A stretch of 64,000 nucleotides of DNA from Convolutriloba macropyga (lineage: Eukaryota). The stretch spans positions 18,786,001 to 18,850,000 of the forward strand of contig NC_134482.1 in assembly GCF_964194025.1 (NCBI RefSeq), read 5' to 3'. Numbering within the stretch: the first letter of the stretch is position 1; each line of letters opens with the position of its first letter. Positions 12,780-44,026 of this stretch are shown piece after piece. The notes below the pieces were generated by a model. The model made no database searches. It had not been told where the DNA came from and worked only from the letters and a program-made list of their open reading frames with translations. The position numbers and the translations under genes were made by a program.

Positions 12780-15539
12780 ATATCAAGGAAGAAGCATAGG
12801 GATAAAGCTAACCAGCCAAACACTCAGTGCAGCCTTTTCTCCTCCATGAAAGCGCTATTTGAAGTCTCACTGAGAACACGAGGCTTGAGGGTGCTACATC
12901 CCCTCAAGCAGAGTACACAGCTCCTCAGAAGTGCGAAGCTGGTTTTCGTTCGGATGTAGCTTATAGTGTCGGCGTACGGCTCTCCGCGTTTTTCGCTGAT
13001 CTTGCTAGCGAGTTGTTTCATAACGCGCGATGCTGATGGCCCAGCACCGTATGAGCATGCAAAAACCACTGCATTGAAACTGCTGTGTTCGGTTTCGCGG
13101 ATTCGCTCTTCGTACTTATTTCGCTTGGTGCTCTCGTGTTATTTGTATGCATCTTTTATGGTCTTAGGGCAGCTCTTCGCGTGAGGGTTGAAAATCTTCA
13201 CATCGAAGAAAGTGCGATTAAAGCGGGAGCCCCAGAGACCGTTTGATTTGATGTCCAGTCGAGCGTCATCATCAGTAGTTGTGGAAATACTCGAGACAAT
13301 TTTTCCATTGAGCGACCGAAGTTTTGGCTTTATCTGGACATCGTGGCAAACCTCATCCATCAAGTTTGCAAGCACGTCTCCAATTTCGTTGTGTTGTAGG
13401 TGCGTATATCCGCCTTTGGCGCAATGTAGGGTATGAGTGAGGCTAAATTGTTTCCTGCATGGGCATATCGCTGCCGTGTTCTTCGCTTCCCAGGTGTAGC
13501 GAAGTGCTATTCCGTCACGGAACTCAGTCTTCGTGAGGTCAAAACTATGTTTTGATAACGGAAGCGCGTTAAGCCAGCTAGATGCTCCTTTATCGAGGCC
13601 AGCTGGATAGTATATTTCTTTTCTTGTAGATTGTTTTCGATTCTGGATTTTTTCGAGATGAGTTCACGTTGCATGTCTGGTTTCTGTCGGAGACTGATCT
13701 TTGTTTTTTCTAATTCACATTGTTGAATTTCGAATGAATCATTAGTGAATGACGCCAATGGACTTGAGAGTTAAATTAATTGCTCAAAATTTTTGTGAAG
13801 ATCTTGGAGGGCGATGTTAATCCCACCCATTCTGATAGGGAGAAAAAAGGTCTCTTTCCTCTTGGATTATTTCTTTGCTTACGGTGTTCGGTATGACTCG
13901 GCCAAGCCGCTCCTCCACCTTGTCTAGAACCCCGTGCATGGAAGGTGTAGTACGCGAGAGGAAGATCAACTTCTGTTGAACCCCCTTCGTCAAACATGCA
14001 TTGGCATTCTGGGGAGAGGTGAGAGCAAATTGACCAAGTCTGTCCCAACTTTTTGTGTATTTAATTTCTGCATTTTTCAGGATATTTTTACTGGCCTCAG
14101 ATCCACTGATAACTGATTCCAGGACTCGAGTGCCCTAAGTGATTTCCACATTTGTGCCTGCAAACACAGTTGAGGCTTGGCGCTCGCTTCCTGGCTTAAT
14201 TATCAACCGACACTTCGGAGGATTGAAAAGATATCCGTACTTGGGACCAAGCTGAGTGAGATTGTCGAAGAGTGCCCTGATATCTTTTAACTTACCGACA
14301 ACGCTACCATCATCAGCATACAATTTTTGTGTCAAGGAGTCATTGTGAAGTTTAATCTTAGGGTAGGATTGCGATTCCATACATTGCCATCGCAAGGGAA
14401 TCACCTTGTGTCGTACCTTGCTGAGACAGAATGCTGGGCTTACCAATGTAGAGATGAGACGGATGGCTATAGGAATTCTGTAAGGCATCAAGCAATGATG
14501 GTTGTAGGGCTTTCACGTTCTCTAATGCTGTTTGTCTATTGAGCACGTTAAATGCGTTTTTTTTGCATCAATTAGTAGAATTGCTTCGTTTTCGTGGTCA
14601 TCAAAACATTGGCGAAACGAATGTAGACCCGGCACTGCCTTGAGTCTTCATTGCATGCTTTCGGATGAACCTAGCACTGATTTTGTCGAAAATATTGGGG
14701 CTGGTAAGGAAGCGTGCGCGGATGTTTGCTCTGAATGCAGTTGGGCTCCAAGGGTTGCCCTTCAGGATGTTTGTCGCGTAAAAACTCGAGGACCGGTCAA
14801 CCGTCTTTGAGATAGGGAGGTGCGGGCACGCCGCCTTATGTTCATCCGCAAGAACACGAATAGCATTACTGATCTTACCACGAGACATGAAATCGTTGAA
14901 AATCTTGAGGTCAGAGTGCTGCTTTTTGTTTCTTGAATTCATTCTCATTTGGATTGCCTTGGCTTCACAGAACAGTTCTGAGAAGTTGCATCTGTCACAT
15001 GCACGCAATCTATGCTTGATAATCTTATTGTTCGATCCGTCGTCCGTGTTCTTTGTTCGACTGATAGTTAAGTGCAAAATTATCATACAGAGGGTCAGAG
15101 ATATATGGATCTATCCGTGTTTACGGCAATCGCGGAGAGGACACTGTGAAGGGCTTCGGCTAACTGTTCCCCTATCTTGTACTTACTGAGCATGAAGCAC
15201 GATGAACTAACATTCAAAACACAAGAAATTGTTCTAAAAATGAAATCAGTGAGAATGGTAAAACCTGACGTGATGAAGGAAGGTGGTTGGCATCAAAACA
15301 TCCCATTCGCGGAGCCTACTAACATGCAAAAACACAAGAAATTGTTCTAAAAATGATATCAGTTGGAATGATACGATCTGATGTGATGAGTTGGGGTGGG
15401 AGATTGGTTCACTCGCCTACGGCTGGGGTGGCGAGGCTTGAAAAGGTGTAGGTTTGATTCAGCCCAGCGCGCACACGTTTTTGAAAATACAGCGGAGGTA
15501 AATTTGCTCTATTTAATAAGTTTATTACAACAATTATGC
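12780..15539 (-). mobile_element. CRE-clade non-LTR retrotransposon (RT plus restriction-like endonuclease), frameshifted
   Basis: ORF pieces carry 'QGTTQGDSLAMAMYG', 'YADDG' and 'LGPKYGY', a Cys/His knuckle ('HTLHCAKGG...HNEI'), and the RLE motifs 'ARLDIKSNGLW..TFFDVKIFNPHA' and 'VFACSYGAGP'. The 5' end is the SL-like motif at 15509-15539. Confidence 0.85.
15509..15539 (-). other. SL-like motif copy A (GCATAATTGTTGTAATAAACTTATTAAATAG)
   Basis: 29/31 match to the consensus of the copies in this window. It lies at the 5' boundary of the CRE element. Confidence 0.75.
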
Positions 15540-15544
15540 TAAAA

Positions 15545-19333: not shown

Positions 19334-22300
19334 TCATATTTTTCGAAGCGAACTGAAACTCCACGCCAAATTAGAACACGGTTTCCAAAAAAACTAAATT
19401 CGGTCAATTTATCTCTTTTTCTGTTTCAATCCTGATCCGCATCAATCGCGTGTAAGGTGGCTATTTTCTGGCAATCTACCGGCTATGTTTTAAGTTTATT
19501 TTATTTAGAATCATTTTTTGATAAACTTATTAAACAGCCTTTCATTGATTCATCTTGTGTGGAAAACTTTTCTTGGGAGGGTTTTGAATACAATACGCTG
19601 AATGTAAATGAGTTATCACATCTTCAAGAGCTCGCCTGCTAAGGCCTGCTTACTTCTGGCCAATTCCCAGGCTCAAGATCTGTACAAAATCCTGCACTAT
19701 GAGTAAGAAGTCGAGTGGAAGTTCCACATTATTCGGAAACACGCGAAGAGAGTTTCGTATTAGACGAAAGCCCTCAACAAATAGAAAATTTTGCAACAAT
19801 TTTAAAAGAAAAAAATTTAAATGAAAAGCACAGCGAAGCAACCAACAAAAAGGCAACACTAGCGTTAGAGAGTGTATTCGTCTGGGCCAAGTCCCGGTAG
19901 TCGGTGATTGTTTCTCTAGCAATTAAATTTGAGGTATTTTTTTTATTTCCTCACAGTCTTTCAGTATCAATAGGAGTAGGTGAAAAAATTAATCAGCTTA
20001 TCTTATTCCGCGGGGTCCTTCAAGATATCCAGGAATAGGATAAATAAGCTTCTTGTCTTTTAAATTGCGCCGCAACATTCCGAAATGTCACAAAACGAAA
20101 AAAGCAGTACTGCAAAGTAACGCTGCCACAGACAAACAAATTACGAGCGTATCATGTAATACGACTGAAAAATAAAAAAATATTGTCATGGGAGCCGTTG
20201 AGTGATCCACTGGATAGAATAAGTCAGTTTGCATTTAATTTAGAAAATGCACCAAATAATATTGCAACCGTCCAAGCTGAAATCAAAAGCCTCAGAGCAC
20301 ACAGTGACGATGAACAAAATGTATCTGTACAAAAACAAGCTTGCTACGCTGAAGCCGTTAAAAGTACGGTCAAGTCAAACGGAACCATGGGTAAAAGAAT
20401 CCCCTGTGTTCGAGAGCTTTCAGAGGGTAGTACCAATACAAGATTGGAACACATAAATATGGTCATCGATTATCATGAAATACAGGAAGTTAAACTAACC
20501 AGGGTATTAATGCTTGGCAAAGTAGATCGATCCAAAACAACACCATATACAATTGTCATCAACTTGGAAAATTCCTTTAGAAATACTCACTTTCAAAGAA
20601 GCGTATCAAACTTGACTATAAACCGGAAAACCAATTAATTTTTAGTTCAGAGTTTTAATCTTGAACGTTGCTATGTCAACAAACGATGCCCTATTACGTC
20701 GGCAGCTGATTGAAACTGTTTTTAAACCCCAACTTTTTTGTATCAGAAATTTTGGAGTTAAATACGGGAAAACAACAGCTGGTTTATCGGACGACACGGG
20801 ATCGTCAATTTACTAATTGAAGTTACAATTAAGGTTCTAACGTTGTTAAATCTGAGATGCCGTACAATATTTGCGATTGCTCTGCCGACAAAGAATTGAC
20901 ATTATTTGAATCGCAGAAACGTGACTCACTCCCAAAATCTTCATTGTCACTCTTTTTCCTTGCCTATCAAGACTAGAGAAATTATCGAAAGTCTGCAGTC
21001 ATGAAAAGCAAACATGGAGGGGTGCTCAATGCAGTAGAAATGCTCTGAAACGCGAACTGCTCATTTAAAAAATGTGACGCCAGTTTTCCTACTTCTAAAG
21101 ACGAATAAACGGCTCTATCTTGATTGGTTTCTCCTATAACACGACTGAAGTTTTTATCGTTGGACAGAGAGCAAGATGCTTACGGTTCTTTTGGATCGTG
21201 AACAACTGAAAGCAACAAATATGCGAGGTCAGATTTGAATGTCAGCTAATGATTATGAAAATACCATCCATGAGTTTGACTTTAACTACACAATTGTTCT
21301 CACACTCAATTGGTTGTTTTTTTTACAATACGGAACTAATAACTCACTCCTTCATCGACTCGTTAGTTAAAGATTACCAAATTAACTGAAAAAATCCGAT
21401 CACCTTCCCTCATGCTAACGTCATTTTTGAGTGCCTTGTTCCATATGTTGCCACTGACATATATCGCCTCCAAAAAAGCAGATTAGGAAGCTTTTCAGTG
21501 GTATGTTTGGTGATAACTATGCCTTTCAACCCCAACCTCTTTGACAACCTAAATTTCTTGGCTCGATGAAAAATAAAACAGAAGTTTCCAAAAATAAAGA
21601 AAGAAAGAAAGAAATTATTTCTCACGAGTACAAAATATAAATCTATTAAATATAATTTATTTATGAAGAGACTCGGAGGGGACAGACAACCGGACTATGT
21701 GTCCTCAAAATCCTGCCATTCGTAGTTGAACTTACTTGTGTAATAGTTGCTCAATAGTAAAAGAGAAAAAAAATGAGAAATTTAAATTTTTTTCGAATTT
21801 TTTTTTCATGAGTTTTCTGTTCTTTTAATGGAAAATCAACCAAGAGCTTAACCATAGACGACTATTAACAGCTACGGTTGTAGACGAGCCTTAATTGAGT
21901 TTACAAGAATTTTTTTTTGAAAGTTCAGAATTTTTCAATTTGCAACAGAATCGCAAATTTTTTTTAAATGATAGCCATATCTCCTGAAATATTGGTCCTA
22001 GAGGGGTCATTCTTTTTCACCAGAAAGCCAACTATTTTTGGGTACTCCTGTAGCATGCAGGCAAGGGGTATGGATTTTTTGGGTACCTATAAGGAAAAAT
22101 TATATGACCAATTCGTCATTATGGAGAATAAGAAATCTTTCAATTTATGATAAAAATTACTCAACTCTTTTGAATTTTGGTTTTCAGCATTATCGAATAG
22201 GTTTTGTTTGGCGAGGCAGTTGAACAGCTTTCTAGCACGGTACTTTACTGATAGTCTTTCAATTTTTTTCTTACAAATCGGTTCATGAAGGACATTCAGG

Positions 22301-25300
22301 GAGTCATTTCTGGCGAATTTTTTCTTATTAAAAATAAAACATTTTATTCAAAAAATTTTCTGAATGTAAGCCATGAATAGAACGAAGAACAAACTTGAGC
22401 AGCTCATAAATATGCAGTTCATACCCGGTTAGAATCTTATGCTTGACAAATATATCTTCAGAATGATCAGAGCGCCTACGAAAATAAATAAATTTAATAT
22501 TTTTTTTCTGAAGTAGATATATTTTCAAACTTGACGCATTTGAGCGACCGTAAACTAATACACCATATTGAACTACTGCATTTATGTTACTTTTATAATA
22601 TCTTATAAGTAATTTCCGCGGTACATAATGTCTAATCTAGTCATATTTTTCGAAGCGAACTGAAACTCCACGCCAAATTAGAACACGGTTTCCAAAAAAA
22701 CTAAATTCGGTCAATTTATCTCTTTTTCTGTTTCAATCCTGATCCGCATCAAGCGCGTGTAAGGTGGCTATTTTCTGGCAATCTACCGGCTATGTTTTAA
22801 GTTTATTTTATTTAGAATCATTTTTTGATAAACTTATTAAACAGCCTTTCATTGATTCATCTTGTGTGGAAAACTTTTCTTGGGAGGGTTTTGAATACAA
22901 TACGCTGAATGTAAATGAGTTATCACATCTTCAAGAGCTCGCCTGCTAAGGCCTGCTTACTTCTGGCCAATTCCCAGGCTCAAGATCTGTACAAAATCCT
23001 GCACTATGAGTAAGAAGTCGAGTGGAAGTTCCACATTATTCGGAAACACGCGAAGAGAGTTTCGTATTAGACGAAAGCCCTCAACAAATAGAAAATTTTG
23101 CAACAATTTTAAAAGAAAAAAATTTAAATGAAAAGCACAGCGAAGCAACCAACAAAAAGGCAACACTAGCGTTAGAAAGTTGTATTCGTCTGGGCCAAGT
23201 CCCGGTAGTCGGTGATTGTTTCTCTAGCAATTAAATTTGAGGTATTTTTTTTATTTCCTCACAGTCTTTCAGTATCAATAGGAGTAGGTGAAAAAATTAA
23301 TCAGCTTATCTTATTCCGCGGGGTCCTTCAAGATATCTAGGAATAGGATAAATAAGCTTCTTGTCTATTAAATTGCGCCGCAACATTCCGAAATGTCACA
23401 AAACGAAAAAAGCAGTACTGCAAAGTAACGCTGCCACCGACAAACAAATTACGAGCGTATCATGTAATACGACTGAAAAATAAAAAAATATTGTCATGGG
23501 AGCCGTTGAGTGATCCACTGGATAGAATAAGTCAGTTTGCATTTAATTTAGAAAATGCACCAAATAATATTGCAACCGTCCAAGCTGAAATCAAAAGCCT
23601 CAGAGCACACAGTGACGATGAACAAAATGTATCTGTACAAAAACAAGCTTGCTACGCTGAAGCCGTTAAAAGTACGGTCAAGTCAAACGGAACCATGGGT
23701 AAAAGAATCCCCTGTGTTCGAGAGCTTTCAGAGGGTAGTACCAATACAAGATTGGAACACATAAATATGGTCATCGATTATCATGAAATACAGGAAGTTA
23801 AACTAACCAGGGTATTAATGCTTGGCAAAGTAGATCGATCCAAAACAACACCATATATAATTGTCATCAACTTGGAAAATTCCTTTAGAAATACTCACTT
23901 TCAAAGAAGCGTATCAAACTTGACTATAAACCGGAAAACCAATTAATTTTTAGTTCAGAGTTTTAATCTTGAACGTTGCTATGTCAACAAACGATGCCCT
24001 ATTACGTCGGCAGCTGATTGAAACTGTTTTTAAACCCCAACTTTTTTGTATCAGAAATTTTGGAGTTAAATACGGGAAAACAACAGCTGGTTTATCGGAC
24101 GACACGGGATCGTCAATTTACTAATTGAAGTTACAATTAAGGTTCTAACGTTGTTAAATCTGAGATGCCGTACAATATTTGCGATTGCTCTGCCGACAAA
24201 GAATTGACATTATTTGAATCGCAGAAACGTGACTCACTCCCAAAATCTTCATTGTCACTCTTTTTCCTTGCCTATCAAGACTAGAGAAATTATCGAAATT
24301 CTGCAGTCATGAAAAGCAAACATGGAGGGGTGCTCAATGCAGTAGAAATGCTCTGAAACGCGAACTGCTCATTTAAAAAATGTGACGCCAGTTTTCCTGC
24401 TTCTAAAGACGAATAAACGGCTCTATCTTGATTGGTTTCTCCTATAACACGACTGAAGTTTTTATCGTTGGACAGAGAGCAAGATGCTTACGGTTCTTTT
24501 GGATCGTGAACAACTGAAAGCAACAAATATTTCATCTGTTATAATTACAGGTGCTATGAATTTTGCGAGGTCAGATTTGAATGTCAGCTAATGATTATGA
24601 AAATACCATCCATGAGTTTGACTTTAACTACACAATTGTTCTCACACTCAATTGGTTGTTTTTTTTACAATACGGAACTAATAACTCACTCCTTCATCGA
24701 CTCGTTAGTTGAAGATTACCAAATTAACTGAAAAAATCCGATCACCTTCCCTCATGCTAACGTCATTTTTGAGTGCCTTGTTCCATATGTTGCCACTGAC
24801 ATATATCGCCTCCAAAAAAGCAGATTAGGAAGCTTTTCAGTGGTATGTTTGGTGATAACTATGCCTTTCAACCCCAACCTCTTTGACAACCTAAATTTCT
24901 TGGCTCGATGAAAAATAAAACAGAAGTTTCCAAAAATAAAGAAAGAAAGAAAGAAATTATTTCTCACGAGTACAAAATATAAATCTATTAAATATAATTT
25001 ATTTATGAAGAGACTCGGAGGGGACAGACAACCGGACTATGTGTCCTCAAAATCCTGCCATTCGTAGTTGAACTTACTTGTGTAATAGTTGCTCAATAGT
25101 AAAAGAGAAAAAAAATGAGAAATTTAAATTTTTTTCGAATTTTTTTTCATGAGTTTTCTGTTCTTTTAATGGAAAATCAACCAAGAGCTTAACCATAGAC
25201 GACTATTAACAGCTACGGTTGTAGACGAGCCTTAATTGAGTTTACAAGAATTTTTTTTTGAAAGTTCAGAATTTTTCAATTTGCAACAGAATCGCAAATT

Positions 25301-28300
25301 TTTTTTAAATGATAGCCATATCTCCTGAAATATTGGTCCTAGAGGGGTCATTCTTTTTCACCAGAAAGCCAACTATTTTTGGGTACTCCTGTAGCATGCA
25401 GGCAAGGGGTATGGATTTTTTGGGTACCTATAAGGAAAAATTATATGACCAATTCGTCATTATGGAGAATATAGAAATCTTTCAATTTATGATAAAAATT
25501 ACTCAACTCTTTTGAATTTTGGTTTTCAGCATTATCGAATAGGTTTTGTTTGGCGAGGCAGTTGAACAGCTTTCTAGCACGGTACTTTACTGATAGTCTT
25601 TCAATTTTTTTCTTACAAATCGGTTCATGAAGGACATTCAGGGAGTCATTTCTGGCGAATTTTTTCTTATTAAAAATAAAACATTTTATTCAAAAAATTT
25701 TCTGAATGTAAGCCATGAATAGAACGAAGAACAAACTTGAGCAGCTCATAAATATGCAGTTCATACCCGGTTAGAATCTTATGCTTGACAAATATATCTT
25801 CAGAATGATCAGAGCGCCTACGAAAATAAATAAATTTAATATTTTTTTTCTGAAGTAGATATATTTTTTTCAAACTTGACGCATTTGAGCGACCGTAAAC
25901 TAATACACCATATTGAACTATTGCATTTATGTTACTTTTATAATATCTTATAAGTAATTTCCGCGGTACATAATGTCTAATCTAGTCATATTTTTCGAAG
26001 CGAACTGAAACTCCACGCCAAATTAGAACACGGTTTCCAAAAAAACTAAATTCGGTCAATTTATCTCTTTTTCTGTTTCAATCCTGATCCGCATCAAGCG
26101 CGTGTAAGGTGGCTATTTTCTGGCAATCTACCGGCTATGTTTTAAGTTTATTTTATTTAGAATCATTTTTTGATAAACTTATTAAACAGCCTTTCATTGA
26201 TTCATCTTGTGTGGAAAACTTTTCTTGGGAGGGTTTTGAATACAATACGCTGAATGTAAATGAGTTATCACATCTTCAAGAGCTCGCCTGCTAAGGCCTG
26301 CTTACTTCTGGCCAATTCCCAGGCTCAAGATCTGTACAAAATCCTGCACTATGAGTAAGAAGTCGAGTGGAAGTTCCACATTATTCGGAAACACGCGAAG
26401 AGAGTTTCGTATTAGACGAAAGCCCTCAACAAATAGAAAATTTTGCAACAATTTTAAAAGAAAAAAATTTAAATGAAAAGCACAGCGAAGCAACCAACAA
26501 AAAGGCAACACTAGCGTTAGAAAGTTGTATTCGTCTGGGCCAAGTCCCGGTAGTCGGTGATTGTTTCTCTAGCAATTAAATTTGAGGTATTTTTTTTATT
26601 TCCTCACAGTCTTTCAGTATCAATAGGAGTAGGTGAAAAAATTAATCAGCTTATCTTATTCCGCGGGGTCCTTCAAGATATCTAGGAATAGGATAAATAA
26701 GCTTCTTGTCTATTAAATTGCGCCGCAACATTCCGAAATGTCACAAAACGAAAAAAGCAGTACTGCAAAGTAACGCTGCCACCGACAAACAAATTACGAG
26801 CGTATCATGTAATACGACTGAAAAATAAAAAAATATTGTCATGGGAGCCGTTGAGTGATCCACTGGATAGAATAAGTCAGTTTGCATTTAATTTAGAAAA
26901 TGCACCAAATAATATTGCAACCGTCCAAGCTGAAATCAAAAGCCTCAGAGCACACAGTGACGATGAACAAAATGTATCTGTACAAAAACAAGCTTGCTAC
27001 GCTGAAGCCGTTAAAACTACGGTCAAGTCAAACGGAACCATGGGTAAAAGAATCCCCTGTGTTCGAGAGCTTTCAGAGGGTAGTACCAATACAAGATTGG
27101 AACACATAAATATGGTCATCGATTATCATGAAATACAGGAAGTTAAACTAACCAGGGTATTAATGCTTGGCAAAGTAGATCGATCCAAAACAACACCATA
27201 TACAATGGTCATCAACTTGGAAAATTCCTTTAGAAATACTCACTTTCAAAGAAGCGTATCAAACTTGACTATAAACCGGAAAACCAGTTAATTTTAAGTT
27301 CAGAGTTTTAATCTTGAACGTTGCTATGTCAACAAACGATGCCCTATTACGTCGGCAGCTGATTGAAACTGTTTTTAAACCCCAACTTTTTTGTATCAGA
27401 AATTTTGGAGTTAAATACGGGAAAACAGCAGCTGGTTTATCGGACAACACGGGATCGTCAATTTACTAATTCAAGTTACAATTAAGGTTCTAACGTTGTT
27501 AAATCTGAGATGCCGTACAATATTTGCGATTGCTCTGCCGACAAAGAATTGACATTATCTCTTTTTCCTTGCCTATCAAGACTAGAGAAATTATCGAAAT
27601 TCTGCAGTCATGAAAAGCAAACATGGAGGGGTGCTCAATGCAGTAGAAATGCTCTGAAACGCGAACTGCTCAATTAAAAAATGTGACGCCAGGTTTCCTA
27701 CTTCTAAAAAACGGTTCTATCTTGATTGGTTTCTCCTATAACACGACTTAAGTTTCTATCGTTGGACAGAGAACAAGATGCTTACGGTTCTTTTGGATCG
27801 TGAACAACTGAAAGCAACAAATATTTCATCTGTTATAATTACAGGTGCTATGAATTTTGCGAGGGCAGATTTGAATGTCAGCTAATGATTATGAAAATAC
27901 CATCCATGAGTTTGACTTTAACTACACAATTGTTCTCAAACTCAATTGGTTGTTTTTTTTTACAATACGGAACTAATAACTCACTCCTTCATCGACTCGT
28001 TAGTTAAAGATTACCAAATTAACCAAAAAAATCTGCGATCACCTTCCTATCCATGCTAACGTCATTTTTGAGTGCCTTGTTCCATATGTCGCCACTGACA
28101 TATATCGCCTCCAAAAAAGCAGATTAGGAATCTTTTCAGTGGTATGTTTGGTGATAACTATGCCTTTCAACCCCAACCTCTTTGACAACCTAAATTTCTT
28201 GGCTCGATGAAAAATAAAACAGAAGTTTCCAAAAAAAAATAAAGAAAGAAAGAATTTATTTCTCACGAGTACAAAATATAAATCTATTAAATATAATTTA

Positions 28301-29282
28301 TTTATAAAGAGACTCGGAGGGGACAGACAACGGGACTATGTGTCCTCAAAATCCTGCCCTTCGTAGTTGAACTTACTTGTGTAATAGTTGCTCAATAGTA
28401 AAATAGAATAAAAAATGAGAAATTAAAATTTTTTTCGAATTTTTTTTCATGAGTTTTCTGTTCTTTTAATGGAAAATCAACCAAGAGCTTAACCATGGAT
28501 GACTATTAACAGCTACGGTTGTAGACGAGCCTTAATTGAGGTTACAAGAATTTTTTTTTGAAAGTTCAGAATTTTTCAATTTGCAACAGAATCGCAATTT
28601 TTTTTAAATGATAGCCATATCTCCTGAAATATTGGTCCTAGAGGGGTCATTCTTTTTCACCAGAAAGCCAACTATTTTTGGGTACTCCTGTAGCATGCAG
28701 GCAAGGTTATGGATTTTTTGGGTACCTATAAGGAAAAAATATATTTGACCAATTCGTCATTATTGAGAATATAGAAATCTTTCAATTTATGATAAAAATT
28801 ACTCAACTTTTTTGAATTTTGGTTTTCAACATTATCTAAAAGGTTTTGTTTGGCGAGGCAGTTGAACAGCTTTTTAGCACGGTACTTTACTGATAGTCTT
28901 TCAATTTTTTTCTTACAAATCGGTTCATGAAGGACATTCAGGGAGTCATTTCTGGTGAATTTTTTCTTATTAAAACAAAACATTTTATTCAAAAAATTTT
29001 CTGAATGTAAGCCATGAATAGAACGAAGAACAAACTTGAGCAGCTCATAAATATGCAGTTCATACCCGGTTAGAATCTTATGCTTGACAAATATATCTTC
29101 AGAATGATCAGAGCGCCTACGAAAATAAATAAATTTAATATTTTTTTTCTGAAGTAGATATATTTTTTTCGAACTTGACGCATTTGAGCAACCGTAAACT
29201 AATACACCATATTGAACTATTGCATTTATGTTACTTTTATAATATCTTATAAGTAATTTCCGCGGTACATAATGTCTAATCT
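19334..29282. repeat. Tandem triplication of a ~3.3-kb block (19334-22640, 22641-25985, 25986-29282)
   Basis: Identical ORFs at 19457, 22764 and 26109 (offsets 3307 and 3345). Both junctions read 'atgtctaatctagtcatattttt'. Confidence 0.95.
19457..21400 (+). mobile_element. Degenerate LINE 5' part (ORF1-like plus APE-like remnant), repeated in each triplication unit
   Basis: The 151-aa ORF at 20183-20638 has a coiled-coil stretch, 'YAEAVK' and 'RVLMLGK...PYTIVINL', like LINE ORF1. A degenerate SL-like motif lies at 19505-19537. The head sequence recurs at ~49583. Confidence 0.55.
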
Positions 29283-31575
29283 TCGAAATAATCCCACACT
29301 GTTTTCCTAGTCTCTTTTTCACATAATCTATATGAGCAAGAAAAGATAGTTTGGAATCTAATCTTAAACCAAGATACTTACATACTTGTTTAAGAGAAAC
29401 TGGACAATTATTTATAGTAAATGATGGAAAGGAAGCACTCATGTTTATATTCATTTGTACAGTTTTTTCTATGTTAAGAGATAACTTGTTTGATTCAAGC
29501 CAACAACTTATCTCTTTCAGATCTGATTCTATTTGAGTCCTATTACATCCTATTGAGGATATATTTGTGTCATCGGCAAAAAGAATTATATCAGTATGTT
29601 TGCTACACTCAGGTAAGTCATGAATATATATTTTGAACAACAAAGGTCCAAGTATTGATCCCTGTGGAACTCCACAGTTCACTTTTCTCCAATTCGATAA
29701 ATGACCATTTATTTCAACCTTTTGTTATCTGTTTGCGAGGTATGATTGAAACCACTTCAAACAATTGCCACGAATACCATATCTTTCTAATTTCCAGAGC
29801 AAAATTTGATGATCTATTGTATCGAATGCCTTTTTGAGGTCAAGGAAGAAACTTAAAACTGGCAGATCATTGCAATTTCTAATTTTTTCAATAAATTCTA
29901 CGAGGGCATCAATTGTACTTTGTTTAAGTCGAAAGCCAAATTGTTTGCATGAGAATAGCAAATGCTTTTCAAAAAATGGTATACTCTGTTGTACATAACT
30001 CGCTCAAAAATTTTGCTCCAGATACTCAACAAAGATATAGGTCGATAATTGTTTTCATCAGTTTTATCACCCTCTTTATGAAGTGGAATAACTTTAGCTT
30101 CAGCGAGAATCTTTGGAAACACACCTTCCCTAAATAACATGTTAATTAGTTCACAGAGAAATGGAGCGATAATATCCGAACTGATCTTTATCAAGATGTT
30201 ACTCAAATTATCTAGACCAGATTATGATTTACTATCAAGTTCATTCATGATGCTTAGGATTTCCTCATCGGAAGTTTTATATAAGAACATGGATTTATTA
30301 TTACACGTGATTGATCTCAATGGTGCATCTGGTATTTTCGAGGCAATCTTCTTACTAATATCTGCAAAATAGTCATTAAAAGAGTTAGCAATCTCATCAT
30401 TTGTCACGTTTAAACTAGTACTTGATTTGAGAAATGGTACATTTTTACTCACTTGATTTCTACCGGAAAGATCCTTAAGTAATTTATATGTTTGTCTTGA
30501 GTCTCCTATGCAAGATTCGAAACGATTCCCGTAAAAATCTGTTTTGGCAATTTTGACTGAATTTTCAAACTTGGTACGTAATCTCTCGAAGTTATTTAAA
30601 TGACTGATGTTTCTTGTGCTTTTCCATTTACGATGAGCCTTGTTTTTATATGTTCTTAGATTTTTAATCTCATTGGACACCCATTTTGGATTCTTATATG
30701 ACTCATTATTGAACGTTCTGAAAGGAGCGAATTCATCGGTTATCTGAAGGAAAAACTTTTGAAATTGATTAAAAGCTGCATCAGCATTAACCGCATTCAG
30801 TATTGTTGTCTTATAGGCATGCATAAAATTTTTCAATTCCGATTTATATCGACATATCTCTCTTACATTTTTTAGGAAAGACGTATCACGGTATTTGAAT
30901 GTTGGACTAACATCGCAACATTTTCGCCATTTAATTAAGACTGGATAATGATCTGAGAAACTTTGATGATCAAGTACAAGGCCTTCGGGTGATGTCATAT
31001 TTTGGTGGACTATATGATCTATGCAAGTTTTGGATGAACTTGTAACTCTGATTGGGGCGGGTTCAAATAAATCAAATCCAGTTGAAACTATTGTGTTTTT
31101 GTAATTTTTTACTAGTTGATTTTCTTTGAAAATATCGAGGTTCAAATCACCACACATTATAAATGGAACTTTTGTTGATGAAAAGTTTTCCATTGATATA
31201 TCCATTTTCTCAATGAATTCGGTTTTGTTGTTCCTAGGCGGATTATATATAACTAGTACTCTAAACATGTTATCACCCTTACATACATCAGCCATTAGTG
31301 CTTCATCCAAATTAGTACTTATTTCTTTCATCAAGGTGTAATCATTTTTCACTTGAATCATTACATCACCACCTTTAGAGATACGGGTTTTAGCTATTAA
31401 TTGATTATAGCCATGAACTAAGTGACATTTCGGATCATCATTTTCTGTTAACCAAGTTTTGCTTAGACATAAAACAGAAGGAGGAGACTCAAGACCAGGT
31501 ATAAGTGCTTCCAAATTGTCCAGGTTCTTTTTTATGGAACGTACATTGATATGCATAATAGTTACTTGATTAAGT
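28726..31575 (-). pseudogene. LINE ORF2 (APE endonuclease plus reverse transcriptase), disrupted
   Basis: Consecutive ORF pieces 30222-31643, 29898-30206, 29725-29961 and 28726-29682 together give the canonical domain order. Confidence 0.9.
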
Positions 31576-32596
31576 TCCTTTTTTGGCATTCCAAAACTTA
31601 GTATTTTTATCAGTTGCATTTTTTCCTGACTCAGTATCAACATTATCAGTAACTTTTTCCTTGGTAACTTCCTTCAAAGCCAGCACTAGCGCGGGAACAA
31701 GATTTTTCACAATATCATTTACCAAGTTGGGATGGTCATAAGGCGTTTCATCTTTCTCCATTGATGGGGATAGCTGCATTCTTTTTCGTTTCACACTTTG
31801 AGTAACAGTGCTCATGGGTTTTCGGGTCAAATTAGGCATTTGCATGGGCGTATTGATACATTTACCAATTTCAAATACCGGTTTGGGTGGTGTAGACTTC
31901 TTAGAAAGACCCGGGGCAACAAAATCACGGAGTTCATTAGTTGATTTAACTTGAGCAGCATCAGCATTGGGCAGATTCTGGTTGTAGGCATAGACATCTT
32001 GTTTCCTAGTAAAAGTTAGAAGGCCCATTTGTTTTGCTTCAGTTCTACTTCCCGGTCCCGCGGAGCTAGATATTCTTCAATTTGTACGGGTCGTCCTAAT
32101 GAATTGCTCATGCCCTTGAGCCAGGTTCTTCTTCGCCATATTAAATCACGGTCCTGGTGATATATAAACTTCACGATTATAGGGGCGTTCGGGCTTTGGT
32201 TTAATGGGTGACACGCTGCTAGGCTGGTGGGGTTGAAATTTAGTTGCAAAATCTGTTTGAAGAGAAACATAATGCTTGATAGTGCGTCGCCTTTGCATTC
32301 GACTTTGTAGAAACTTAGGCACAGTTTTCTCGAGTACTTTTCAAGTTCAACAATTCGCTCATCCCGTTTGTGTATTGCATTTAAGTTGATGTTCATCATA
32401 TCTTTCATGTGTCCTTGACTCTGTTTAAGCCTCCTCAGTTCACTGTCCTGCTTTATTATCATTCGCATCATTTTTCGCATAAGATCTTTCATCGTCGAAC
32501 CCACATCATCGTCATCATCTAGTTTTTCAACTTCGTCCGCAATAGAGTCAACGTCAACTTAAAGCATTCTTCAAGATCATCAAATTCCATGTTCAT
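31570..32596 (-). pseudogene. LINE ORF1 (coiled coil plus L1-type RRM), frameshifted
   Basis: Reads 'ERIVELEKYSRKLCLSF...ACHPL...PIIVKFI..QDRD'. The ATG at 32596 is 3 nt after SL-like copy B. Confidence 0.8.
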
Positions 32597-32599
32597 TCT

Positions 32600-32631
32600 C
32601 TATTTTAATAAGTTTATCACAACAATTGGGC
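32600..32631 (-). other. SL-like motif copy B (GCCCAATTGTTGTGATAAACTTATTAAAATAG)
   Basis: Internal to the LINE and directly before the ORF1 ATG. Confidence 0.75.
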
Positions 32632-32781
32632 TAATAATCCAATTACTGACAACGGGGAACCTCAAGGTAGCCTTTTGCGATCAGCACTGTGAGGGGGGAA
32701 TGTAAGAGACCTCAATCTTAACCTCTTCCAGCGGAACCTCAAGGTAGCCTAATCTGGAAGAACAAAAAGACTAAGAGTAAC

Positions 32782-33430
32782 TTACTTTACCAGGTACTGC
32801 AGATACACCGACAGTCCTTTGCTGTACTTCTTGTATAACACCTTCTCCTTGATGAGATTGCGCAGATTGTTTAGACCGTCTTCGTTTAAGTGAATGAGGT
32901 CCTTTTTGCTGAAGTACCGTGCACCTGTTAAGTATTGTTTGACGGACCTGTAGTTCCACTCTACTTTACAGGGCTTTTTGGGTTTGCGTTCAGCTACGTA
33001 CTGTAAGAGGTCGTTGACGGCTTTCGTTCTTGTTTTGTTTTCGTCACGTTCTGGCACTCCCAGCACGAAGACAGAGGGTGCTCGGTTGCAAAGGAAGTTT
33101 GCGAGCTCAACAATATCGTCTGCTGCTTTTCTGGCAGAAGTAAGGGAGAGTTCAGTGAAATTGTAAAGGTCATCACCTCCAATGAAATGAATTATGATGT
33201 CAAACAGACCAGCTGGGGGGACGTAGTCGTAGGCGTGTCTGACAGGCACCTGGTAGGGAGACAATATTGAGGTTGCCTGCGTCCAGGTAGCGTGCCTGAG
33301 AGTGCAAGAAGGAAGTACTTCGTCGATGATGTTCTGGTGACGTGATATCTGGACTTCTTCCTCTCTGACATTCAGGACCTTTTCTCTAAAATCCTCCAAC
33401 GGGAGGCCTTCCACAAAAGGTCGCAAGCAT
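32782..33430 (-). pseudogene. Stand-alone SGNH/GDSL esterase-like ORF of the LINE
   Basis: Contains 'FIGGDDL' (block III) and 'DLIHLNEDG' (block V DxxH). An alternative frame near 33300 gives 'YFLLA-SQARYL...IVSLPG' (blocks I/II). Confidence 0.7.
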
Positions 33431-33437
33431 TACAAAT

Positions 33438-33468
33438 CTATTTAATAAGTTTTTCACAACAATTAGGC
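33438..33468 (-). other. SL-like motif copy C (GCCTAATTGTTGTGAAAAACTTATTAAATAG)
   Basis: 30/31 match to the consensus. An ATG follows 7 nt downstream, and two partial copies lie upstream at 33469-33501. Confidence 0.8.
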
Positions 33469-33739
33469 TTTCACAACAAATCATCATTATCACAACAAAT
33501 CACGGTGCAACGTGCAGCACTTCATCGTGGATCTCATCACTTCTATAAAGCGTCAAACATAATAAAGTGCCTTAAAAAGAGATCAACAGGAAGGTTATTT
33601 TTGCATTGTTCAAAAAAGTGGAAAAGACTTGAAACGAAATTCAAGGATCCAGTGATATGGAAGTTTGCAGTTATTGAAAATTGATGTTTCTGTAAAATTC
33701 GAAAATCCACCCCTACAAAAATCATTGACCTGAAATCGT

Positions 33740-41090: not shown

Positions 41091-41121
41091 CTTTTTAATA
41101 AATTTATCACAACAATTAGGC
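41091..41121 (-). other. SL-like motif copy D (GCCTAATTGTTGTGATAAATTTATTAAAAAG)
   Basis: 29/31 match to the consensus. It lies about 50 nt inside the 5' end of the L2 element and is followed by TTTCAG. Confidence 0.75.
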
Positions 41122-41172
41122 TAAACCTAACCCCACAAAGCTCACGTGTTACCATGCAACTCTGCTCTGCGC

Positions 41173-43540
41173 TCTATTTGATAAGAAACTTCTCAATCCA
41201 TTAAATCGCCTTTACACGGATACTCTAGCAACAGTTTTCTTTGTATTTCATGATCGAGGAAAGCAAATGCTTTTTAAAACAAAAAATTAGAAGAGTTAAT
41301 TTTTTGATGTCTTGGTCTCTCTGCCAGCTCGGCCAATGAGTCATCCAATTTGGAGCCAGGTTTGCGGATGGGTATTGTCTTTGCCCGTTGTAATTCACTT
41401 GGGAGAAAACCTTTTTTTAAACCCATATTCATTAATCTTGTGAGACGCGATATAAGCTCAGGGGCAATAAATTTCAATAATATATTGCTTAGATGACTGT
41501 CTCCAGATGAGAACTTATTATCCGAGTCATTGAATATTTCCTGAACTTCTGGTTCATTCACGGGGAAGAAAAACATGAAAAATGAAAAACTCTCAGGAAA
41601 ATGAAGGACATTAGGGAGAGATACTTTAAGGTTTTTCACTTACAGAGCTAAAAAAATCGATCAGTATTTCAACAATTGTCAAAGGTGACGGTAAATCAGA
41701 GCACGTTACGTATTGTGAGAAAGCTGGCAGAGTATGGTCTTTAACGGATTGACCTTTTAAATCATTTAATGACTTAAATATTTGCCTTGAGTCTCCAATA
41801 CGAGATCGAAACCTCTTTTAATATTGATTTTTTGAGGTCTCCACCTCTTTGGCAAAATTTTCCCGCAGCTTTTTGCATTTTTTTTCATATTGTCAACATT
41901 AGGGTCCATCTTCGATTGTCTGTGCAATTTATTACGTTTGGAGCACAAACTTTTTCGCCTATTGGAATACCATTTAGCTCTTATTTCTGCACTTTGCCAA
42001 TGGAGAGAACTGGTATGTTACCTCAGAGACAACTTTATGGAAATAAGCAAATGAATCATTTTTGTGATTATTGTCAACTAGAAAATTCTGTGTTAACAGT
42101 AGTTCAGGTTGTAGAAAACCAATATCTCGAAAAATACAATTGCTCGTATATTAATGCCACAGGAAATGAAGATTCGGAACGGATCGGTTAAATTCTGATT
42201 TTCAGGTACTCCTGCTAAACTTTTGTATATTTTTTTGATAAAAAGTTTGTATTTTTTTGATAAAAAGTGAGCAAGGCAGGTGGAACATTCATCAATTACT
42301 CTGGTTGTTTTTTTCGACCAACATGTCAAATTCATTTGATTCGATGATGTTTATATACTGCTTCGTGAGATAAATTTTAACCAACATGTCTTAAAATCTC
42401 CAGACTGCTGTTGGTTTTGAACTTGGTATCTTTTCATGACACATCAGAATCCTCCAGGAATGCCATCTTTTTAGAGCTTGGAGGATTATAGCAGGAAAGT
42501 GAAGATAGAAGTCAGGACAGTGAAGATAGAATAATTTTTTTTCTGAAATTTCTGTTTCTTCAATCAAATTGACATCTCTATTTATTTTGATAGCACTACA
42601 TGTCCTAGAGTCACGAGCTTTAGAGGAAAATGATTATATTCTTTAATTATTTTTTAGCCAAGTTTCACTTAAGCAAATTATAGACGGTGGGGGCTAAAGG
42701 CTGTATACTAGTGCTACAAACTTAATTGTTTTTCTTCAGCGATCGCACATTCAAATGCTGTTTATAAAGGGTACTAAAATTGCGCAGTGCATTAACTGGA
42801 GATTTTTTTAAAGTTTCAAGATTATGAATGCTTTGTTAGTTTCTGGTTTCTTTTGCTGATCTTTGTTAATCAATATTTCACATTGGCGCTTCAATGTCTC
42901 AAGGATGTTTCTGCCAGTTTTTTTCTACCTCATCATGCTCATGTTTGCATTATGTCGACAAAATCTTGCAATGATTGGGCTTCCAGCCGGATCCCTCGAT
43001 GGCTGACGCTGGGAAATAGATAAACCTTCAATATTAAATGTTTTTCATAGCTTTCCAAATATCTACATTGGTTTTCAATGTGCAATCCGCGAACTTCTGC
43101 TCACTGTTCTCTGGAATTCGTGTGATTCGGTTGTTGTCGCGCCGGTTATAAGTTTCTAGTTCCTCAGCGTCGATGTTTTGAGATTGCAAAGCCTTTCTTG
43201 GAAACATGAATCTGCCGTAAATACATCCTGCACTTCATCCTTCACAGCTGCGATGGATTCTTCAATCATGTAGTTGGTAAATTTTTGGCAATATTTTTTG
43301 TATGGCATCCTCTATCCTTTGCATCGGCTCATTTTCGTCTTCTAAAATAGGATTTCAAGGCTCTTTTCTTATCAAGTGGTTTAACTGATGTAGGCGGAGT
43401 TTGGCCTTGATAACGGAGAACTGGTCGGGCAATCGAGTGTTCCAGACCAAAGGTATCATTAGTGTCGGTCTTTGTGCTAGCATCAATGTCTGCATTTTCA
43501 TCTCTGAAACTATTTAATTAGTTTATCACAACAATTAGGC
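41173..43540 (-). mobile_element. Older, degraded Crack-like LINE (ORF1, APE, RT N-terminus)
   Basis: ORF 41274-41639 reads 'NKFSSGDSHLSNILLKFIAPE...AKTIPIRKPGSKLD', with 'IGDSRQIF' near 41790 and APE remnants at 42100-42800. It starts with SL-like copy E. Confidence 0.8.
43510..43540 (-). other. SL-like motif copy E (GCCTAATTGTTGTGATAAACTAATTAAATAG)
   Basis: 30/31 match to the consensus, followed by TTTCAGAG-ATG. Confidence 0.8.
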
Positions 43541-44026
43541 TAATATTAATGAGTAAAATAGTTTCAGATACAAAATTGTGTACGGATCTGGTTTCAGTTG
43601 CAATAAGAAATGTTTACTGAAGACGCCAGGAATCTTTTTACTAGTTTGTATGCTACAATCACTCATTTATTAGTAGAAAAAATTGAAGTTATCGGTAACC
43701 TGCTCTCTTGTTCACAAATTAGATGTAGCGAATGGTCCCGGATTTTTTACGACCTCTGCACTGCAAATGAAAAAATATACTAGTCAAATAATTTATTTGT
43801 AATTCTAGTAATATACTAAAAGTTTTCTAATAGATTTAACTAATTATTACTGTCTCTGATGTACTCATTTTCACCATTAAGATTTTGTCTGCTCGGAATA
43901 ACTTGTTTCCAAAAACTTTTTTTTACTAAAATGCATTCGAATGAGGTAATTTATTTGTACCAGCAGCTGAGTTTCGTGTTCAATGTGTTTTACAAATCGC
44001 ATTTTAATTGGTAGTTCACTGTTTAG

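Follow-up and report, generated by a model that had tools for sequence, protein, structure and literature searches.

Long interspersed nuclear elements (LINEs) that encode an esterase are well described, and in these elements the esterase is a domain of the ORF1 protein (ORF1p; PMC3905857). Reticulate evolution of ORF1, with horizontal exchange of ORF1 modules between LINE lineages, has also been proposed (PMC4120745). Here we describe a chimeric LINE found in a stretch of 64,000 nucleotides from the acoel Convolutriloba macropyga (assembly GCF_964194025.1, contig NC_134482.1, positions 18,786,001 to 18,850,000). We refer to this whole stretch as the window and give positions in its own numbering. 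The element carries two copies of a spliced leader (SL), one at its very first base and the other behind an esterase open reading frame (ORF). In having an SGNH esterase located 5' of an ORF2 with an apurinic/apyrimidinic (AP) endonuclease and a reverse transcriptase (RT), it is similar to the esterase-bearing CR1-like and L2 LINEs (type IV ORF1p; ZfL2-1; PMC3905857, PMC4120745). It differs from them in that the esterase has an ORF to itself, ahead of a distinct ORF1, and in that the acquisition event has been preserved: both parents can be identified, and so can the exact breakpoint. The likeness is one of gene layout.

Three other systems offer partial parallels. The SL relics of dinoflagellate retrogenes are DNA-encoded SLs at the 5' ends of retroposed sequences, and they include tandem or multiple copies that arose by repeated trans-splicing and retroposition (PMC6050394, PMC5585692, PMC12014239). 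In our case, by contrast, the host is an acoel metazoan, the tagged sequences are autonomous LINEs rather than host genes, and the second SL does not form part of a 5' stack but is found 837 nt into the element, downstream of an entire captured ORF. As in the 5' transductions and template-switch chimeras of L1 (U6/L1 and others; PMC11838501, PMC4476161), a foreign sequence is fused 5' of a LINE and inherited by daughter insertions. Unlike in those chimeras, what was added here is a coding 5' module from another LINE, it was joined to a full-length recipient at the latter's capped, trans-spliced 5' end, and a small family resulted. Finally, the SL-resolved operons of nematodes, tunicates and flatworms share with this element several cistrons, an SL before the downstream cistron and an SL trans-splicing host, but their SL is added to the RNA post-transcriptionally, whereas the one described here is DNA-encoded and drifting. 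A literature search that included the rotifer Hebe paper, but was not exhaustive, turned up no earlier account of LINEs headed by an SL in animals, or of a LINE with an SL trapped within it.

We propose that the element is probably a recombinant, in which the 5' front of one LINE family, here called 'E', was fused to a complete, SL-headed member of another, 'L', and that the internal SL is a scar without demonstrated function.

Layout of the chimeric LINE and its two parents

The chimeric LINE lies on the minus strand from 33469 to 28237 (5233 bp), and all of its features given below are on that strand. Read from its 5' end, it consists of an SL, an upstream ORF (uORF), an SGNH esterase ORF, a 149-nt spacer, a second SL, ORF1, ORF2 (endonuclease and RT) and a (TTCT)n tail. 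The 5'-terminal SL (copy C, 33438..33469) is 32 nt long with one private mismatch; it begins at the first base of the element and matches both the published SL and the exon of the SL RNA genes. The donor 5' untranslated region (UTR) that follows contains a uORF of 14 codons plus a stop (33386..33430, read directly from the letters), which is out of frame with the esterase ORF (32782..33371). The latter is broken and starts at the ATG at 33371 (MSERKKSRYH...). The original prediction, made from the window alone, had placed copy C ahead of an esterase ATG at 33430. The SL does lie ahead of that ATG, but the ATG opens the uORF, and the intact esterase of the copy L062, together with its homologues, moves the esterase start to 33371.

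The donor-family intercistronic spacer (32643..32781) contains an 18-bp direct repeat, exact at 32656-32673 and 32733-32750 as had been predicted, where none is expected by chance. Folding of the spacer RNA gave z = -1.8, with no significant structure. Donor homology stops at 32643, and the fusion junction is filled by 10 nt, TTGGATTATT (32633..32642), which are identical or nearly so in four chimeric copies and present in neither parental family. The internal SL (copy B, 32600..32632) is 33 nt long; it includes one additional A and reads C instead of T at position 5 (T5C). It precedes the recipient ORF1 (31570..32596), whose predicted start at ATG 32596 was borne out by the intact ORF of the copy L063, which begins there with MNMEFDD; in the window copy ORF1 is frameshifted early. 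ORF2 (28726..31643) is split into several frames and matches Pfam Exo_endo_phos (E 9.6e-6; AP-type) and RVT_1 (E 7e-14). The 3' UTR and (TTCT)n microsatellite tail (28237..28725) lack poly(A), and their 3' end is common to chimeric and esterase-less copies. With esterase, ORF1 and ORF2 all disrupted, the window copy is dead.

A junction-centred search returned 27 candidates, every one of which was scored, and the junction was spanned by only four: the window copy, L061, L062 and L063, which are 91-93% identical from the initial base of the SL down to the 3' tail. The three others lie on contig 12, on contig 4 and on contig 16 (about 2 Mb away), with unrelated flanks on both sides. All four begin exactly at the first base of copy C, and in all four the donor sequence stops at GGTCAGTAA and is followed by the 10-nt filler. 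Both changes in the internal SL, T5C and the extra A, are likewise common to all four, while the five changes that distinguish their 5' SLs from the canonical SL are all private. Recipient-only copies start at the matching SL, which places the junction at the recipient's true 5' end. In a tree of the ORF1 region the four chimeric copies form one group (support 100/99), with terminal branches (0.02-0.047) shorter than those of esterase-less copies (0.05-0.072). These are four independent insertions derived from one junction. Because they have different flanks and an identical junction, the layout must have arisen once and then been copied, rather than reflecting a chance juxtaposition. The original prediction had named the absence of such linkage from other copies as its own refutation; the same two-leader layout was instead found in four insertions.

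Both parents are still present in the genome. Donor 'E' copies (L035-L039) carry a 5'-truncated SL, the same uORF, the esterase and the spacer, including both 18-bp repeats, so the repeat predates the fusion and is not its product. Beyond GGTCAGTAA they continue into a cysteine-rich zinc-finger ORF1 (MTRTSCHTCGKK...) and then into Exo_endo_phos_2 and RVT_1 domains. The esterase 'cassette' is therefore the 5' module of another LINE. The earlier idea that an SL-headed esterase cassette had been placed before an already SL-headed LINE thus described the origin of the element correctly, except that the cassette was not free-standing but consists of the 5' 827 nt of another LINE family. Recipient 'L' copies (L040-L043, L064-L066) carry a canonical SL at the position of copy B and share ORF1, ORF2 and the 3' tail with the chimera; the recipient is thus a complete, SL-headed LINE that is also present without the esterase. 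Across conserved blocks, donor and recipient RTs share only about 32-36% identity. In their esterase segments, the chimeric copies resemble the donor copies L037-L039 as closely as they resemble each other, suggesting that the capture took place shortly before the family spread.

We also examined the encoded proteins. The window esterase has lost 2 nt at each of two places, one of them within catalytic block I, and a further 47 nt close to its 3' end. The intact version is a 211-aa ORF in L062 (L062:7174-7809, minus strand). SGNH blocks I, II, III and V (ADS, PGA, the invariant GGND and DxxH) are present in it and in 11 homologues from our protein collection, while the match to Pfam Lipase_GDSL_2 was sub-threshold (E 3e-4). 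A sequence search of the PDB gave nothing meaningful. An AlphaFold2 (AF2) model built on the homologue alignment (mean predicted local distance difference test score, pLDDT, 71.6) matched only SGNH hydrolases in the PDB. The top matches were sialate O-acetylesterase, PAF-AH and TesA (template modelling score about 0.5-0.57, top probability 1.0), and the esterase of the zebrafish retrotransposon ZfL2-1 (4c1b) appeared lower in the list. The catalytic blocks and the modelled fold together identify the ORF as an SGNH (GDSL-like) esterase. It is encoded on its own, and 186 nt separate its stop from the ORF1 ATG; it does not form a domain of ORF1p.

The intact ORF1 of L063 encodes 317 aa (L063:6191-7144, minus strand), and the frameshift in the window copy falls after about 20 codons. 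No Pfam match was found for ORF1 or for 12 further homologues, and searches of the PDB with ORF1 alone and with an ORF1 profile gave nothing meaningful. Its single-sequence AF2 model shows a long N-terminal helix at low confidence (pLDDT 45), and its neighbours in the structure atlas are Baculo_FP_2nd and L1 RNA-binding-domain-like clusters, which we treat as a lead only. Sequence searches of the PDB with the RT and the endonuclease gave no information on clade.

Spliced leaders in the genome

The 24-nt core of the SL occurs five times in the window, always on the minus strand, while none was expected from 100 shuffles. Aligning the five contexts revealed a sharply bounded unit of 32 nt (AGCC...AAATAG) with unrelated sequence on both flanks. 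This motif is the trans-spliced leader published for the acoel Symsagittifera roscoffensis, where 30% of genes are trans-spliced; a full-text search with the last 20 nt of the SL returned the S. roscoffensis genome papers only. In the genome of C. macropyga (1.18 Gb) we found 2750 matches with at most three mismatches. SL RNA genes account for about 1380 of them and are mostly arrayed in tandem on contig 9, where the 32-nt exon ends at the donor site AAATAG/GTAAGT and is followed by a stretch complementary to the 3' half of the SL and then by a GC stem-loop. The other half or so are dispersed.

At all 30 dispersed loci inspected, the full SL stops at the last base of the exon, with varied sequence after it and unrelated DNA before it, and an ATG often follows within about 10 nt. 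Identity of the motif with the SL RNA gene exon marks it as an SL relic, and so does the exact donor boundary, which was found at these 30 loci and in the five window copies alike. Single families use alternative SL acceptors (L005 versus L006, L003 versus L019, L043 versus L040-42); in L006, for example, the SL is followed by 38 nt ending in TTTCAG and then by the sequence that adjoins the SL directly in L005. Varied flanks and alternative junctions are what repeated trans-splicing followed by retroposition predicts, and not what insertion into SL genes predicts. Judged from these sequences, trans-splicing is the likely source of the SLs on these LINEs.

Several further features of the dispersed SLs were noted. 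About 260 of them, across many unrelated element families, directly precede the acceptor-like hexamer TTTCAG; in the window this is seen at 41094-41124 and 43513-43545. We considered a longer SL exon variant ending in TTTCAG as the source, but no SL plus TTTCAG stands before GTRAGT anywhere in the genome, which rules it out. One idea is that tandem acceptors allow copies to be re-spliced. Many 5' SLs are immediately preceded by stuttered, incomplete repeats of the SL itself or of the adjoining target (L001, L004, L020, L022, L038); the window has two of them, made of SL nt 7-20, ahead of the AGCC, at 33470-33505 on the minus strand. This stuttering suggests slippage or repeated template jumps during formation of the 5' junction. 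Tandem SL-SL joins occur at six places, on contigs 2, 4, 7, 9 and 11.

Route of fusion and role of the internal leader

We propose the following origin for the chimera. RNAs of the recipient 'L' would receive the host's 32-nt SL by trans-splicing, which would be why 'L' DNA copies begin with the SL. In one event, the 5' 827 nt of 'E' (SL, uORF, esterase ORF and most of the spacer) would then have been joined, via the 10-nt filler, to the first base of a full-length 'L'. Two routes to this product fit the data. In the first, an 'L' element inserted in sense into the spacer of an 'E' copy, and a transcript that was trans-spliced at the 'E' 5' acceptor and ended at the 'L' 3' end was retrotransposed, which would amount to a 5' transduction. 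In the second, the RT would have jumped from the 5' end of the 'L' RNA onto an 'E' RNA (template switch). We slightly prefer the first, for which short double-SL heads (SL, 45-74 nt, SL) offer some support; they are found at other loci (L001/2, L048, L051, L070) and resemble the same process at a smaller scale. The chimera would then have retrotransposed at least four times. Its internal SL would be the fossil 5' end of the recipient's trans-spliced RNA, lying uncapped within the chimeric RNA and probably inert, with the downstream ORFs translated as in other multi-ORF LINEs.

The pattern of changes in the two SLs agrees with this proposal. Both decay at about the neutral rate after insertion. 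The changes in the 5' SL are all private while those in the internal SL are shared, a pattern compatible, within the small numbers available, with each round of retrotransposition adding a new canonical SL.

Some observations weigh against the proposed recombinant origin or sit uneasily with it. An exact-pattern search for the progenitor locus that the first route implies (the 3' end of 'L' and, after it, the remainder of the 'E' spacer) gave no matches, although such a search misses diverged copies. The tree of esterase segments does not separate chimeric from donor copies. A 2-nt deletion in esterase block I (window ~33302; alignment columns 173-174) is common to the window copy and L061, at odds with the ORF1 tree, which pairs L061 with L063; this conflict points to a recurrent deletion or to recombination between source copies. 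All four chimeric copies are broken and the family is small (n=4), so that the chimera is only a putative autonomous element. Lastly, the internal SL is nearly intact and is bracketed by acceptor-like AGs, so that a function is possible.

The last point bears on the most serious alternative, namely that the element is resolved like an operon. Here the internal SL and its U-rich filler would serve as a 3' splice acceptor, yielding a full-length RNA with the esterase first and a freshly SL-capped ORF1-ORF2 mRNA. The acceptor-like AGs stand in a U-rich context at both ends of copy B (...GATTATTAG/CC and ...TTAAAATAG/AGAATG). In the six tandem SL-SL joins, moreover, the second SL lacks its first AG (...AAATAG/CCTAATTG...), a configuration that is absent from the control (0 places) and that, like the relic leaders of dinoflagellates, bears the mark of trans-splicing repeated on a DNA-encoded SL. 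The 260 dispersed SLs directly before TTTCAG and the alternative SL junctions within families point the same way. On the other hand, the ORF1 tree places each of the four esterase-less SL-ORF1 copies sampled outside the chimeric clade, and none of them carries the markers of the chimeric lineage; four full-length chimeric copies exist, so the RNA is not always cut at the internal SL; and that SL has drifted by two shared changes. We therefore regard operon-like resolution as unlikely.

The original prediction had gone further and given each upstream cistron its own leader, like a pre-resolved operon. This found no support. In an operon the SL is added post-transcriptionally at an intercistronic acceptor, whereas copy B is DNA-encoded and uncapped, with two lineage-specific mutations shared by all chimeric copies, and the esterase-less copies lie outside the chimeric clade. 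A more general version holds that DNA-encoded SLs are working parts of these LINEs, the AGs at both ends, in many cases backed by a TTTCAG just behind the SL, allowing read-through transcripts to be re-trans-spliced into 5'-complete, capped mRNA and so replacing an internal promoter. We consider this equally doubtful. If it were true, the internal SL would split the three-ORF RNA in operon-like fashion into an esterase-first genomic RNA and an ORF1-ORF2 mRNA.

A promoter role for the SLs is less probable still. Intragenic SL promoter elements have been described for the SL RNA genes of Ascaris, and thousands of copies start precisely at SL base 1, as they might if each DNA-encoded SL were an internal promoter or initiator and transcripts began at both SLs without trans-splicing. 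However, the conserved stretch that precedes the SL in arrays of SL RNA genes is missing from the retrocopies. The alternative junctions and the tandem SL(AG)SL relics call for repeated splicing events rather than inheritance of a promoter, and the changes in the 5' SLs of the four chimeric copies are all private. We thus think it very improbable that the SLs act in this way.

Two remaining explanations can be dismissed briefly. That an esterase fragment and a LINE were juxtaposed by chance, or by an assembly artefact, draws on the high density of nested LINEs in the window and on nothing further, and it is refuted by the same junction, filler and variant internal SL in four copies with unique flanks and a precise 5' SL start. 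LINEs specific for SL genes exist in nematodes and trypanosomatids, but it is the least credible reading that the SLs here are target remnants of such a LINE (NeSL, SLACS or CRE type), since the flanks lack the upstream region of SL genes, no GTAAGT intron follows the element, the four copies sit in unique DNA outside SL genes, the SL is complete to the last base of the exon in many unrelated families, and the ORF2 endonuclease is AP-type.

Neighbouring elements and implications of the fusion

All five SL-headed elements of the window share the minus strand, either by chance (1 in 16) or perhaps because they inserted within a minus-strand transcription unit or stem from read-through out of one. 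Upstream of the chimeric LINE is an older SL-headed LINE without an esterase (43545-41125, minus strand), truncated on its 3' side by the insertion of a neighbouring element. The original prediction had presented it (as 41173-43540) as a related element that starts directly with the SL and shows no esterase. It does begin with the SL and lack the esterase, but at the nucleotide level it shares only the SL with the chimeric LINE, the resemblance being otherwise confined to 34-80% amino acid identity in short endonuclease and RT segments.

The element that truncated it (41124 to about 35000, minus strand) is itself a LINE, with SL plus TTTCAG, esterase, ORF1, endonuclease and RT, and no internal SL. 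Its minus-strand features are the N-terminal part of an SGNH esterase (40819-40541), a PHD-like zinc-finger (cysteine-rich) ORF1 (40277-39315), the endonuclease (39287-38586) and the RT (38585-37254). Its 3' portion (37318-35710) is a duplicate in rearranged form, where the C-terminus of the esterase, the first 128 aa of ORF1 and the C-terminus of the RT occur a second time. In this LINE the esterase is natively combined with a PHD-like ORF1, and in the donor family with a zinc-finger ORF1, as in the esterase-bearing CR1-like and L2 LINEs.

The recipient family is represented in the window by two further fragments, 5'-truncated 3' ends at 21596-22638 and 24938-25983 (minus strand), which share a truncation point and are about 97% identical to the copy studied here. 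They sit inside an apparent 3.3-kb tandem repeat that also bears an SL-like 23-mer on the plus strand (19515, 22822 and 26167). The fifth SL of the window (15508-15540, minus strand, two mismatches) heads a different repeat family (...CAAATTTACCTCCGCTGTATTTT), which has a double-SL head in L001/L002.

The fusion adds an animal and transposon case to the SL-relic phenomenon, which in the literature we found is otherwise described only for host genes of dinoflagellates. The two changes in the internal SL make it possible to tell the DNA-encoded leader from a freshly spliced one in RNA: if the internal SL were used as an acceptor, transcripts of the chimeric lineage would carry a canonical SL directly on AGAATGAAC or CCCAATTG. 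Exchange of 5' ORF modules between LINEs (esterase, PHD and RRM types) has been inferred from incongruent trees, and the events themselves are rarely visible. Here the host SL serves as a natural tag: within the recombinant, it shows to the base where the mature RNA of the recipient began. With both parents still in the genome and the product at no fewer than four sites, the element documents one concrete route by which a LINE can gain an extra ORF.

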